Origin: Chlorokybus atmophyticus
Taxonomy: Eukaryota; Plantae; Mesostigma and Chlorokybus algae
Assembly: GCA_009103225.1 (NCBI GenBank)
Contig: RHPI01003261.1
Location: 124,001 to 188,000 of the forward strand
Direction of reading: 5' to 3'
Length of the DNA stretch: 64,000 nt
In this document: positions 34,764 to 53,883 of the stretch, in pieces
Layout: every line of letters starts with the position of its first letter
Position numbering within the stretch: position 1 is the stretch's first letter
Notes under the pieces: generated by a model
What the model was told of the DNA's origin: nothing
Seen by the model: the letters and a program-made list of their open reading frames with translations, nothing else
Database searches by the model: none
Made by a program: the position numbers and the translations under genes

Positions 34764-36430
34764 TCAATGGGACCTGATGAACCACCACAGCGCAATGCCG
34801 AGGCACGCCCCGAGGAAGGCCGTGACGCCCTTCGCTATGCGTTCTCGATTGACAATCATAGCGCGGAACTGCGCGCGCTCGTTTGTGCGGGGGAACGGTT
34901 TAGGTGTCCCGTCTGTGTCTTTGGGCACAGGCACGACGAGGAACCGGCACAGGGGTTCCCACCCCTCCTTCAAATTGAACACTAGCAGCTTGCTTTTTGG
35001 CACACGCGCCTTCACCTCCTCTACCCACCTCTTGTACACCGCCACCGCATGCCCCTCCTCCTCGAACCGTCCATCGAACAACCTCGGATTGTTCCACGCA
35101 ACCTGGTGAGGCCAATGGCGTGCGTGCGTGTGTGTGTGCGTGTGTGCGCGCGTGCGTGCATGCGTACACTGACGCGCGTGTGCTTGTGTGTGCGTATATG
35201 TGCGCGCGCATGTGTATATGTTATGGTATGCATGAAGTGTGTTCATCCGATGTTGGGTCTTCCAGAAGCTTCACTTACCAGGTCCACCATGAGCAGAAAG
35301 CGGCGGAGGAAGGGTATGCACGCAGTCATGGCTTTACTCATGATGGAGCCACCCCGGTTGAACTCGTAGATGGTGGACTTGGCGGAGGCGTACCACTCCT
35401 CAGGGCTGTCCCGCACTGTCAGGATGACCTATCGACATGTACACTGTCAAAGTGTTTGTGTGCGTATGTACAATATGCACGTGCATGCATGGAAGGGTGC
35501 ACATGCACCTACTCGTGCATGTGCACGAGTGCGCATGCGTATACACAGCAACACAAAGCCACATACATGATACATGCCTGTAATTTTGCTATCGCCATAA
35601 CAGCAGTGCAGCAGATGCACTGTGCAGACACTAACTTCTTCTTGGCATTATGCCACAATGTGGCATGTTGTCTCCACAGTCCGTCACCTTGGCGTTGGGG
35701 TATTGCTTCATCATCTCCTCATAGTACGCTACTGACGGATGGTCGACGGACGCTCTATATGCCGGCCGGCCCTTCTCCTCAGGAACGAAGATTTTATTGA
35801 AATCAAAGTCCTCACCTGTGCAAGTAAGCCATCAACATACATTACAATTCTACAACCACTGTGAATCATGCAAGGTGTACATGTCTACCCTGAGTGCTAT
35901 TGTCTCGTGCCTCCTCAGCCAGTACGTAGCCAATGCATGCTACACTCTTTCAGCCTCTCCACTCGAGTGACTCTTGCGTGCACATTCATTGCACTCATTG
36001 CGCACTGGTCAGTTTGTGCCGATAGTCACGTGCACACAGAGCATGAGTTGGTTAGCCCGGTGGTGGTTGTCTGAGCACGAATGCATTGGCTGACTGTCTG
36101 CTGCTGCACGTGACTGCTGGCTGCACTACACCATGCTGTACACCAAGTGCATGTCCGAGACGTAGCTTACACCTTCAGTACACACTTGTACGCACGCACA
36201 CAAAGACGCATCCGTGACGAAAATATCCTCCCACAACAATAGCACATCAGGTGTTCAACGCGACCTTGCTGTATTTGCTTCGCGCAGTCGATCCACTTCT
36301 GCGTATCGCCTGGGTTGGGGAATATCTCGGCCATATGGTAGCAAGGGTTGAAGCCCAACTGCTCCAGCGCCGCCTTCAGCGACATGGTCCCCGTGCGACC
36401 GAACCCAGCGCCAATCACGTCGAGTCCCAT
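34764..36430 (-). CDS. Sulfotransferase family protein (Sulfotransfer_4-like), copy A, C-terminal TM anchor
   Basis: Exons 36265-36430, 35688-35815, 35279-35428 and 34764-35102. 5'-PSB motif VIGAGFGRTGTMSLKAALEQLG..PCYHM, VDHP, 3'-PB motif VILTVRDSPEEWYAS, LLVFNLKEGWEPLCRFL, PFPRTN. Confidence 0.9.
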
Positions 36431-36822
36431 GGCGGGCTGTGCAGCGCTGTAAAACGCCTCTGGCGTGCTTAATGTCACAGTGGTACAGTTTAAGGGGGTC
36501 TTCCTCTACCACAAAGCAGGGCTCGAAGGCACTAAGCAGTGTAAGAGAAGCAACACCGCCGCCACCCCCGCCGTGCAGGCACTGCAATGATGACCCCCGA
36601 GGGCAGGAGGTACGCTTGCTACGGAGTGTCTGTCAGACGCGTGTGCGGGCGCGCGAGCTTGTCTGTCAGCGACTGTGTCGCACAGAATCATGTAAGCCGT
36701 TGATGGATCGTGCGCGCGTGTGTCAGGCAAGCTCAGGGAAGCATTTCACTAATTTTACACGTGCAACGAGCTCCGGTCGTTGCACATGCAAATGAGAATG
36801 ACTGCTTCACATTCATGTTACG

Positions 36823-36868
36823 TGAGTCACGTCATACTTCATAGGTCAGGACTCACCTTATCCTGCAC
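36823..36868 (-). promoter_or_regulatory. Candidate cis-element cassette upstream of sulfotransferase A (TGAGTCACGTC and GACTCACCTTATCCTGCAC)
   Basis: The same two motifs recur upstream of copy C (54233-54242 and 54261-54280) at a similar distance from the ATG. Confidence 0.55.
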
Positions 36869-37019
36869 GTCTTCACCAAAACAACGGATGTATTACATGA
36901 AAACAGTGAGTTCCTGAGGTGTTAATACCTCACACAAGTATCATCCGTACAACTCACTCAAGCCTACACAACATTATCATGGGTCAGGGCAGCGACATCG
37001 GCTACGCCGTCGCGGGGAA

Positions 37020-51139: not shown

Positions 51140-51560
51140 CATCAGCAAGATGTGTACCGATATATTGCTAGCGCTACACATGATACGCTGCGCCTCGAGG
51201 TGTATTTTGTCTTTCATGTACCTAATTACCTCGATTATTGAAAAGCGCTCTGACTTCATGCCCATCCTGACCGTGAAGCTAGCGAACTGTCGAAAGTACA
51301 CACCATGAGCCTGAAGACATATTCATCCCCCTAGCCGAGACCTTCGGTACTCTGGGTGCCTTCCACGCGCTAAATGCTGATTGACGCGTGCGTTACATGG
51401 TCTAGCACAGAGGGGTTGCTTGCTAGCCGCAGGTCAGCCTTCATATTCATGTACCGGCAACATGTTGCTTATGCGCTACAGCGTGCTCAAGGTGTGGCGC
51501 TGTTGGGGAGAGGGCGACGACAACCGTCTGTCTGCCATTCCGTACTGGCCAGCACCACAG
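51140..51560 (+). mobile_element. Second decayed CRE-like non-LTR retrotransposon fragment
   Basis: Frameshifted THDTLRLEV (51176 onward), RKY, FIPLAETFGTLG (51322 onward), MYRQHVAYALQRAQGVALL (~51450-51510): same motif order as the 37-kb remnant. Confidence 0.6.
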
Positions 51561-51877
51561 CATGTCTCTGCAACAACCTTGTTGGACGTTGCAGCCGCTG
51601 CCGCTCTGGCGTGAGGTCTGCATGCTGGCGCGCATAGTTTGGTGACACGAGTGGTTATTGCTATTCGTGTTGGTGTAGTACCTAACCAAGCACAAGCCAC
51701 CTTAGGAGGGTTGTGCTTGGTTGTTGTGTGGCTAGCACTGTGGGTTCTGAAGTTCTACACAGACTCCATGAACATCCATCACAACCAAGAGATGATGGTA
51801 CCCTTCTGCGTTGAATATATAGTTTCAAGCTATACCACATATGTGGCAATCGCTATTTTTGCAATTGCTCACCATCA

Positions 51878-53883
51878 CTAAGACTTGGTAAACCGCCACA
51901 TGACAACTCCAATGCACGCCCCAACGACAGTCGCAACTTTCCACACAGCACGCTCTCTGGCCGCCACCCTAGCGCGAAACTGCGCGCGTTCGTTGATGCG
52001 AGGGAAGGGTTTACTCGTCCCGTCTGTGTCCACCGGCACGGGCACATTGAGGAACCGGCACAGCGGGTCCCACCCTTCCTTCAGGTTGAACACAAGCAGT
52101 CTGTCTGCTGGCACACGCGCCTTGACCTCCTCAACCCACCTCTTGTACACAGCCACCGCATGTCCCTCTTCCAGGAAGCGACCATCGAAGAGGCGGGGAT
52201 GCTTCCATACCACCTGGTGAGGCCAGCATGATGTTTGTGTTTGTGTGCGTGTGCGTGTGCGTGTGCGTGCAGTGCAATGGGCTTTCCAGTAATATTATGT
52301 ACCATGTCCACCATGCGCACGAAGCGGCGGAAGAAAGGCACGAACCCAAACACGGCTCTTTTCACGAGGGAGTGGCCCTGAGTATGCTCGTAGATAGTGG
52401 ATCTGGCGGAGGCGTACCACAGCTCGGGGCTGTCCCGCACTGTCAGAATGACCTATCATTACATATGTTATGTAAGTGCATGTCAGCGTGTGCATGAGTG
52501 CGTGTACACACAGAGGCAAGACAGCCTGTGTGTGGTATGTTTGCGTTTCGTGCTATACAACTATTGCCAATGCAGCCGCACACAGGCTGTGCAGTCACTA
52601 ATCAAGTTTCAACAGCATTCCACAATGCTGAGCGCTGTCAATCATGCTCAAAGCCGTCACCTTGGAGTTGGGGTACTGCTTCATTATCTGCTCATAGTAC
52701 GTTGCTGTCGGATGGTCAACCGCCGACTTGTATGCTGGCCTGCCCTTCTCCTCGGGCATATAAATCTTGTTGAAGTCAACGTCCTGGCCTGTGTGAACAA
52801 CAACGCAATTTCCATCATGCAATGTTGTTGCACATGTCTTGTTTGGGTTGGGTAAAAAGAGAATCACAAGTGCTGCACATGGCCATCTACAGGGCGCTTG
52901 CTCCGATTTCTCATCTCTCCCCAGCTAGTATAGAGCCAGTGCATAATGCTGTAACAGTAGTGCACACCGCGTATACGCACGCAAGTGTAATTGATGATAA
53001 GCTCGGTGCAGTTGTGCTGCATGTGTGGTCAGAGAGGCATCAGCCATGATGTGCATGTGCTGCATCAAGCTAACACAATGCTGCCCCTGCACAGAGATCA
53101 TACAGAAGATCTGTACGCACATGCGCGCACATGCACATGTGCCTCTCTCTCTCTCTCTCTCTCTCTCTCTCTCTCTCTCTCTCTCTCTCTCTCTCTCTCT
53201 CTCTCTCTCTCTCTCTCTCTCTCTCTCTCTCTCTCTCTCTCTCTCTCTCTCTCTCTCTCTCTCTCTCTCTCTCTCTCTCTCTCTCTCTCTCTCTCTCTCT
53301 CTCTCTCTCTCTCTCTCTCTCTCTCTCTCTCTCTCTCTCTCTCTCTCTCTCTCTCTCTCTCTCTCTCTCTCTCTCTCTCTCTCTCTCTCTCTCTCTCTCT
53401 CTCTCTCTCTCTCTCTCTCTCTCTCTCTCTCTCTCTCTCTCTCTCTCTCTCTCTCTCTCTCTCTCTCTCTCTCTCTCTCTCTCTCTCTCTCTCTCTCTCT
53501 CTCTCTCTCTCTCTCTCTCTCTCTCTCTCTCTCTCTCTCTCTCTCTCTCTCGCTCTCTCGCTCTCTCTCTCTCTCGCTNCTCTCGCTCTCTCGCTCTCGC
53601 TCTCTCGCTCTCTCTCGCTCTCTCTCTCTCGCTCTCGCTCACCCACCAAATACAATGAATCTACCAAGCCAACAACGCTTGACGTGAGTCACGTCAAGGA
53701 CACCGTACACCTACCTTTCTCTACTTTCTGCGCGCATTCGATCCACTTCTGCGCGTGCCCCGGGTTCATGAACACCTCCAGCATGTGGTAGCAAGGGCCG
53801 AATCCCAGCTGCTGCAGCGCCGCCTTCAGGGACATGGTGCCCGTGCGACCGAGCCCAGCACCGATCACCTCCAGGCCCGACAT
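51878..53883 (-). CDS. Sulfotransferase family protein, copy C
   Basis: MSGLEVIGAGLGRTGTMSLKAALQQLGFGPCYHM, SAVDHPTATYYE, VILTVRDSPELWYAS, LLVFNLKEGWDPLCRFL, PFPRIN; same introns; TM tail KVATVVGACIGVVMWRFTKS*. Confidence 0.9.
53143..53640. repeat. (CT)n/(GA)n microsatellite of ~500 bp in intron 1 of sulfotransferase C
   Basis: Pure CT from 53143 to ~53551, then degenerate CT/CG to 53640 with one N. Confidence 0.95.

Follow-up and report, generated by a model that had tools for sequence, protein, structure and literature searches.

What enzymes are encoded by three sulfotransferase genes that lie in tandem in an early-diverging streptophyte alga, and where did they come from? The genes, here called A, B and C, fall between positions 34764 and 53883, on the minus strand, of a 64 000-nt stretch of the Chlorokybus atmophyticus genome (contig RHPI01003261.1, positions 124 001–188 000); we call the whole of this stretch the window and give all positions in its coordinates. 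An earlier note on this DNA saw in them an old horizontal acquisition or a retained ancestral family that had gained introns and a membrane anchor and then expanded locally, forming an undescribed membrane-bound sulfation module, for example for mucilage, wall or defence metabolites. We think it probable that they are three tandem duplicates, kept by purifying selection and in two cases shown to be expressed, that encode cytosol-facing, tail-anchored O-sulfotransferases of family PF17784 for small or lipid-like acceptors and belong to an old, patchily retained eukaryotic family. The trio is an ordinary lineage-specific tandem expansion of a known, poorly studied enzyme family, not a new invention, and the evidence supports neither of two attractive ideas about it, a newly gained anchor and a bacterial transfer. 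The outcome is a clean annotation of the three-gene array, RNA-supported for B and C and with the public model of A corrected.

Gene models

Each gene has four exons. Gene A (Chrsp68S07387; 34764–36430, minus strand) has exons at 36430–36265, 35815–35688, 35428–35279 and 35102–34764 (stop included), with introns at 35816–36264, 35429–35687 and 35103–35278 (449, 259 and 176 nt), and encodes 260 aa. Gene B (Chrsp68S07365; 47652–49061, minus strand) has exons at 49061–48905, 48594–48467, 48229–48080 and 47990–47652, introns at 48595–48904, 48230–48466 and 47991–48079 (310, 237 and 89 nt) and a product of 257 aa. Gene C (Chrsp68S07366; 51878–53883, minus strand) has exons at 53883–53715, 52788–52661, 52452–52303 and 52213–51878, introns at 52789–53714, 52453–52660 and 52214–52302 (926, 208 and 89 nt) and a product of 260 aa. 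Exon lengths run in parallel (exon 1 166/157/169 nt in A/B/C, exon 2 128 nt and exon 3 150 nt in each, exon 4 339/339/336 nt). With the exons assembled by script, the introns of the three genes occupy the same positions, in phases 1, 0 and 0, all are GT..AG, and all three open reading frames (ORFs) are intact, which confirms, with these outer coordinates, the set of same-strand paralogues described before.

Amino-acid identity is 78% between A and B and 70% for A/C and B/C. The ratio of nonsynonymous to synonymous substitution rates (dN/dS) among the copies is 0.22–0.31 and dS is about 0.6–0.7, values that mark them as old duplicates kept under purifying selection. A tblastn search of the window with the three proteins matched the 12 known exons only, with no further copies or pseudogene fragments.

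The database proteins for B and C (P0164 and P0165) are identical to our models and were used for the searches with these two genes. The public model of A (P0001; in EukProt under Chlorokybus atmophyticus, JGI Chlat1 protein 7932, Chrsp68S07387) has 253 aa and is mis-spliced: set against the model drawn in parallel to B and C, it continues into intron 1 and is short of both the beginning of exon 2 and the first 16 codons of exon 4. Our exon model of A was drawn from its sequence and the parallel with B and C, and RNA support covers B and C; the joined model was used only in the paralogue alignment, dN/dS estimates and trees, and database searches with A were made exon by exon.

Expression and splicing

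In contigs from two RNA runs of two studies (X1 and X2), introns 1–3 of B and introns 2 and 3 of C are missing, each precisely as modelled and, read on the plus strand, with CT..AC ends. This skipping identifies the contigs as RNA. When the C contigs were compared with exon 1 of B, the four mismatches were C's own bases and the loose end was 53874–53903, which holds the C start codon and 5′ untranslated region; intron 1 of C is therefore also removed. Thus all three introns of B and of C are removed at the modelled borders, B and C are expressed and spliced as modelled, and two of the three copies are shown to be expressed.

The RNA contigs extend to at least 49145, 5′ of B. Contigs of a third run with the same organism label (X3; compared with 48189–49061) match the B exons at only 95–99% and have a different 5′ end, which was found nowhere in the window; they point to either an additional paralogue elsewhere or a different strain or species of Chlorokybus.

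Family, fold and catalytic motifs

The Pfam scan covered ten exons, all four of A and exons 1, 3 and 4 of B and of C. Every one of them matches PF17784 (Sulfotransfer_4), colinearly with the profile. For A the four exons score 63.7, 20.4, 21.9 and 69.3 bits (gathering cutoff 22.8 bits) at profile positions 2–49, 68–92, 93–139 and 148–215 of 215, while exons 1 and 4 of all three genes lie at 58–70 bits; for the database proteins of B and C a PF17784.8 match is precomputed. On the same ten exons PF00685 and PF13469 gave no match at E ≤ 1, no carbohydrate sulfotransferase family of Pfam was matched, and NCBIfam gave nothing meaningful. Known carbohydrate sulfotransferases belong to Pfam families other than PF17784. 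The proposal that the trio is of the Sulfotransfer_4 type rather than the Sulfotransfer_1 type of soluble land-plant enzymes has thus held up in the profile comparison meant to decide it (PF17784 against PF00685 and PF13469), and the nearest structures point the same way.

Those structures are Cpz8 and SgdX2, from bacteria, and the schistosome sulfotransferases (SULTs). In a search of PDB sequences with full-length B the E-values were 1e-41 for Cpz8 (9kf1), 3e-35 for SgdX2 (8y9p) and about 1e-25 for the schistosome enzymes. An AlphaFold2 model of B, built from a 42-sequence alignment, reached a mean predicted local distance difference test score (pLDDT) of 95.2 and a predicted TM-score of 0.89. 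With this model as the Foldseek query, ranks 1–19 were all of the same family (E from 1e-17 to 5e-12) and the next match was TPST (E = 3e-4); target-normalised TM-scores were 0.85–0.90 for Cpz8 and SgdX2 and about 0.7 for SmSULT.

Across 42 diverse homologues the invariant residues (B numbering) are G5, G7, G9, R10, T11, T13, S15, H30, D77, P79, R101, W107, S110 and T114, together with a C-terminal G-W-x-P-x-C-x-F block. A, B and C all carry the motifs GAG[FL]GRTGT and VILTVRDSPE.WYAS and a C-terminal hydrophobic 19-mer, so that the cofactor-binding motifs and the hydrophobic helix with its short basic tail, both claimed in the earlier note, are present in each copy. The predicted loop for the 5′-phosphosulfate of 3′-phosphoadenosine 5′-phosphosulfate (PAPS) is GAGFGRTGTMS in A (36380–36412), GAGLGRTGTRS in B (49017–49049) and GAGLGRTGTMS in C (53830–53862), all on the minus strand, and this G-x-G-x-G-R-T-G-T-x-S loop has its aligned counterpart in Cpz8, SgdX2 and the fluke SULTs. 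R101 and S110, in the VILTVRD...WY.S motif of all three proteins, would by analogy be the Arg and Ser that bind the 3′-phosphate of PAPS. The D-x-P residue D77 is matched in the alignment by the aspartate of T-D-L-P-S in the fluke enzymes. A hydrogen bond joins Asp91 of SmSULT to the hydroxyl of the acceptor (PMC4618941); counting positions puts D77 at index 93 in the chain of the 4mua construct (259 residues), which would be Asp91 only if that construct had two extra N-terminal residues. On this evidence from sequence and model, A, B and C are predicted to be PAPS-dependent O-sulfotransferases of the Sulfotransfer_4 or ‘S. mansoni-type’ family (PF17784, IPR040632), in which the N-terminal loop with R101 and S110 would hold PAPS and the invariant Asp would activate the acceptor hydroxyl.

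By sequence and fold the best match is Cpz8 (Streptomyces, caprazamycin biosynthesis; PDB 9kf1 and 9kf2), which at 37–39% identity shares with the algal proteins the GxGRTGT loop and the VDxP, VxLTVRDS..WY.S and EGWEPLC.F motifs. It differs in being a soluble chain of 212 residues that ends just after the domain, without the C-terminal hydrophobic helix, and its gene is bacterial, intronless and, by the entry title, part of the caprazamycin pathway, whereas no pathway partners are evident near the algal genes. The bacterial ‘activating’ sulfotransferase SgdX2 (35% identity, TM-score 0.90 target-normalised, the same motifs) acts in a bacterial secondary-metabolite pathway; its alignment ends before the tail of B and shows no counterpart to it. 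SmSULT-OR and the other schistosome SULTs (PDB 4mua and others), the founding structures of PF17784/IPR040632, have the family and fold of A–C but only 28–30% identity, and the crystallised enzymes are soluble, although flukes also have paralogues with a terminal hydrophobic helix (Paragonimus). With the soluble land-plant sulfotransferases (SOTs; PF00685) the algal proteins have in common the use of PAPS and the general P-loop-like sulfotransferase fold; the land-plant enzymes differ in family (no PF00685 match on the scanned exons), in having a His as the base where A–C have the Asp of D-x-P, and in having no tail anchor.

C-terminal helix and predicted topology

The three proteins end in a single hydrophobic helix followed by a tail of 3–7 residues that includes a basic residue. 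The predicted tail anchor of A (34776–34832, minus strand) is KGVTAFLGACLGIALWWFI, then RSH and the stop, with a Kyte–Doolittle 19-mer value of 1.6, an Eisenberg hydrophobicity of 0.69 and a moment of 0.12. The corresponding helix of B (47667–47723, minus strand) is VWGVTAALGACLGVMLWWF, then TKSR and the stop, and that of C (51890–51946, minus strand) is VWKVATVVGACIGVVMWRF, then TKS and the stop. Over the three helices the Kyte–Doolittle values of the 19-mers are 1.5–1.7 (about 1.5–2.0 for the tail), Eisenberg mean hydrophobicity is 0.51–0.69 and the hydrophobic moment 0.06–0.32; high mean hydrophobicity with a low moment is what one expects of a membrane span rather than an amphipathic helix. 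In the AlphaFold2 model of B the tail is the end of one long helix, residues 221–256, with block-mean pLDDT of 84–97.

At the other end of the proteins the PAPS loop starts at residues 5–9, too near the N-terminus for a signal peptide or signal anchor to precede it. Hydropathy and sequence, read without a dedicated signal-peptide predictor, likewise gave no N-terminal hydrophobic segment in A–C, and the next most hydrophobic window (about residues 129–133) falls in helices of the globular model. In tail-anchored proteins a C-terminal anchor with a short tail leaves the N-terminal domain in the cytosol. By this analogy the catalytic domain of A–C is predicted to face the cytosol: the tail helix would be inserted after translation as the anchor, and the domain would sit on the cytosolic face of an internal membrane. 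Golgi type II carbohydrate sulfotransferases are built the other way round, with an N-terminal signal anchor and a lumenal domain, whereas A–C have the anchor at the C-terminus and no hydrophobic segment at the N-terminus.

The tail is not peculiar to Chlorokybus. Counting a protein as tailed when its last 45 residues include a hydrophobic 17-mer that is followed by no more than 15 residues, we found the tail helix in 120 of the 140 full-length relatives recovered, a sample that leans towards tailed proteins because the queries contained the tail. It is present in nearly all named relatives, among them bacteria (Sphingopyxis, Ktedonosporobacter, Ktedonobacteraceae, Actinobacteria, Actinomycetota, Chloroflexota, Anaerolineales and Herpetosiphonaceae) and eukaryotes (Mesostigma viride and the aphelid Amoeboaphelidium, each with two copies, Paragonimus flukes, the Mucoromycota fungus Calcarisporiella and the chlorophyte Tetradesmus). 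Tailed genes lie in genuine chromosomal DNA in Sphingopyxis (1.5 Mb contig), Ktedonobacteraceae (152 kb) and the Amoeboaphelidium genome. The position at the very C-terminus and the basic residues right after the helix are kept across bacteria and eukaryotes. End to end, the proteins of Mesostigma viride (Mv17909 and Mv17910), Amoeboaphelidium, Calcarisporiella, Paragonimus, Tetradesmus, Ktedonobacteria, Actinobacteria and Sphingopyxis have the architecture of A–C at 36–51% identity, and these uncharacterised relatives begin their domain at about residue 5 and have one hydrophobic helix and a short, mostly basic tail. With so wide a distribution, the idea that the genes had gained a membrane anchor is not supported; the architecture appears ancestral, not newly gained in Chlorokybus. 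Most close relatives within this branch of PF17784 are tailed, yet every member that has been characterised or crystallised is soluble.

One tailed relative, from Tetradesmus obliquus (P0287, 427 aa), contains about five near-identical internal repeats of about 40 residues (MGPMM.KVLWQGILKGDFED...EWNE.VKQ); the repeats may have expanded within the gene or may be an artefact of repeated exons in the annotation.

Origin and duplication

In a quick tree of 140 rows A, B and C form a clade with support of 99 and the two Mesostigma proteins form one with 95; Chlorokybus, Mesostigma and Amoeboaphelidium fall together, with weak support, outside the large group that holds the named bacteria. Left free, this tree separates Mesostigma from Chlorokybus. 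Holding the two together as one clade gave a tree that was 11.7 log-likelihood (lnL) units better than the free one (approximately unbiased (AU) test, p = 0.635), and for that reason we do not rely on the separation. A careful tree, built from 25 named sequences, has all 13 eukaryotes on one side of a single branch and all 12 bacteria on the other (ultrafast bootstrap 56, Shimodaira–Hasegawa-like approximate likelihood ratio test (SH-aLRT) 97); in it A, B and C are again a clade (98/99), and their order is (C,(A,B)). The local expansion proposed for the trio is borne out by this clade, at 98–99% support in the two trees. The trees also make the Chlorokybus and Mesostigma duplications independent, and the copies would have arisen by local duplication once the lineages of Chlorokybus and Mesostigma had parted, with the branching order (C,(A,B)).

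A survey of plant sulfotransferases published in 2025, which did not include Chlorokybus or Mesostigma, counts IPR040632 proteins in Klebsormidium (1), Volvox (1), Cymbomonas (7), the fern Adiantum (3) and Ginkgo (1), and none in Chara, Marchantia, Physcomitrella, Selaginella or angiosperms (PMC12506393 Table S1); two of the Cymbomonas proteins have the adjacent accessions KAK3283433 and KAK3283434 (PMC12506393). Taken together, the sequence comparisons favour an old eukaryotic family that was patchily retained and repeatedly duplicated in tandem.

Adjacent PF17784 pairs were also seen in unrelated organisms, namely on a metagenome scaffold (L003, 1191–3134) and, judged only from consecutive ids, as the Mesostigma pair Mv17909/Mv17910 and the Cymbomonas pair KAK3283433/KAK3283434. 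Tandem duplication seems typical of the family.

Acceptors and alternative readings

The acceptors would be hydroxylated small or lipid-like molecules at the membrane surface, not lumenal polysaccharides. This rests on analogy with the small-molecule acceptors of the nearest characterised relatives, which by their PDB entry titles act on small molecules: Cpz8 in caprazamycin synthesis, SgdX2 as an ‘activating’ enzyme, and SmSULT with oxamniquine. The divergence of the acceptor-side segments (residues about 115–150) may reflect different acceptors of A, B and C. No pathway partner was found among the window's large ORFs, where a WW domain and Nop25 are the only Pfam matches, so the trio is not part of a cluster.

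The earlier note had named mucilage, wall or defence metabolites as examples of what the enzymes might serve. As a membrane-bound module sulfating mucilage or wall polysaccharides in the secretory pathway they would suit an alga with an extensive extracellular sheath (PMC10762512), and the predicted anchor also fits. The PAPS loop at residues 5–9 leaves, however, no space for a signal peptide or signal anchor, a C-terminal anchor with a tail of 3–7 residues would put the domain in the cytosol, the closest characterised relatives all act on small molecules and no carbohydrate sulfotransferase family was matched on the scanned exons. Since the catalytic domain is predicted to be cytosolic and not Golgi-lumenal, we hold sulfation of lumenal polymers to be highly improbable. 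The anchor itself might be read differently, the C-terminal helix being monotopic, lipid-droplet-binding or an oligomerisation helix, and the enzymes peripheral or soluble. It is rich in Gly, Ala, Cys and Trp and moderately hydrophobic, AlphaFold2 draws it as the continuation of a long helix leaving the domain, and the PF17784 proteins LdrG and LdrH of the fungus Aspergillus oryzae associate with lipid droplets through amphipathic helices, without a transmembrane span (bioRxiv 10.1101/2022.11.24.517872). The low moment and high mean hydrophobicity of the algal helices are nevertheless those of a membrane span, and the C-terminal position and following basic residues are conserved from bacteria to eukaryotes; a helix that does not cross the bilayer seems to us distinctly unlikely.

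For the origin of the genes, the alternative is a bacterial source, which we regard as unlikely. An ancestor of Chlorokybus, or of Chlorokybus and Mesostigma, would have taken a tail-anchored PF17784 gene from a soil bacterium (for example of the Chloroflexota/Ktedonobacteria or the Actinobacteria), and three introns and the duplications would have followed. The homologues from Ktedonobacteria, Actinobacteria and Chloroflexota are 40–47% identical to A–C, against 42–51% for the nearest eukaryotic ones, and the tail is common to both; the family is patchy in the green lineage (PMC12506393 table), and the two Amoeboaphelidium homologues have no introns and so offer no ancient common intron to back vertical descent. 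Against this, both trees group the Chlorokybus genes with other eukaryotes and not inside a bacterial clade, and the clade with Mesostigma is not rejected, fitting the data better than the free tree does. Neither the horizontal acquisition suggested before nor a recent transfer is supported, and any transfer would have to be ancient, because of the dS of 0.6–0.7 among the copies, the three introns and the host-like composition.

Several points weigh against our preferred reading of old, cytosol-facing, tail-anchored enzymes. We infer the membrane insertion, the target membrane and the acceptors of the algal members; the tail, with much Gly and Ala, has only moderate hydrophobicity; and LdrG and LdrH show that membership of PF17784 can go with lipid-droplet binding in place of a span. 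Bacterial neighbourhoods (Sphingopyxis and Ktedonobacteraceae) consist of housekeeping genes, with no conserved partner and no hint of the substrate. The branch between eukaryotes and bacteria is weak, and the sample of named sequences is small, its members having been picked for their similarity to tail-bearing queries. Finally, the adjacency of A to B and C crosses two gaps in repeated DNA and rests on scaffolding.

The anchored PF17784 proteins of bacteria, algae, early fungi and flukes might further be one ancient conserved class of membrane-tethered sulfotransferases facing the cytoplasm or cytosol, their substrate being a membrane lipid or some other hydrophobic metabolite (a sterol, hopanoid, carotenoid or polyketide hydroxyl, for instance), with the Chlorokybus trio sub-functionalised for different acceptors; we offer this as a tentative and rather doubtful extension. 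In the literature searched, where mentions of PF17784 are sparse, we found no description of a tail-anchored sulfotransferase and no discussion of the anchor in this family. The word ‘undescribed’ used for the trio is right in that no plant or algal member has been characterised, and wrong in that the genes are annotated and IPR040632 is catalogued in five green-lineage species (PMC12506393). For work on algal sulfated metabolites or lipids, or on the ‘S. mansoni-type’ family, the trio supplies candidates and a testable topology, with the domain cytosolic and the tail in the membrane.

Other features of the window

Among the remaining large ORFs, those at 19785–20384 and 5877–6482, both on the minus strand, have the Nop25 (nucleolar protein 12) and WW-domain matches; the large ORFs at 26741–32611 (minus strand) have no Pfam match.

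Between A and B lies a Ty3/gypsy chromodomain long terminal repeat (LTR) retrotransposon (38788–45709, plus strand), with LTRs at 38788–39314 and 45183–45709, gag at about 40329–41177 and a pol ORF of 890 aa at 42364–45036. Its Pfam matches are Retrotrans_gag, RVT_1, RT_RNaseH, Integrase_H2C2, rve and Chromo. The LTRs are 527 bp long and 99.6% identical, and the element is young.

Runs of N occur at 38294–38303, 41180–42152, 42400 and 53579, and none touches any exon. The first three lie beside or inside the retrotransposon: the 10-N gap (38294–38303) is just upstream of the element and the 973-N gap (41180–42152) interrupts it. Around the 10-N gap, 37283–38293 repeats as 38304–39314 (1011 bp, 99.9% identity), and after the 973-N gap a 234-bp RNase H piece at 42153–42386 is repeated 1.1 kb downstream at 43267–43500. 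These duplicates look like uncollapsed or misjoined repeat assembly, not biology. Since each of the two larger gaps is flanked by duplicated sequence, the DNA cannot be taken as continuous across them; B and C share one continuous stretch.

The last N, at 53579, is a single base in intron 1 of C, within a (GA)n/(CT)n microsatellite of about 500 nt (53140–53640). CA/TG-rich microsatellites fill intron 3 of A and of C, and GCG/GGC triplet repeats lie about 90–130 nt 5′ of the start codons of B (49150–49190) and C (53950–53990), on the minus strand.

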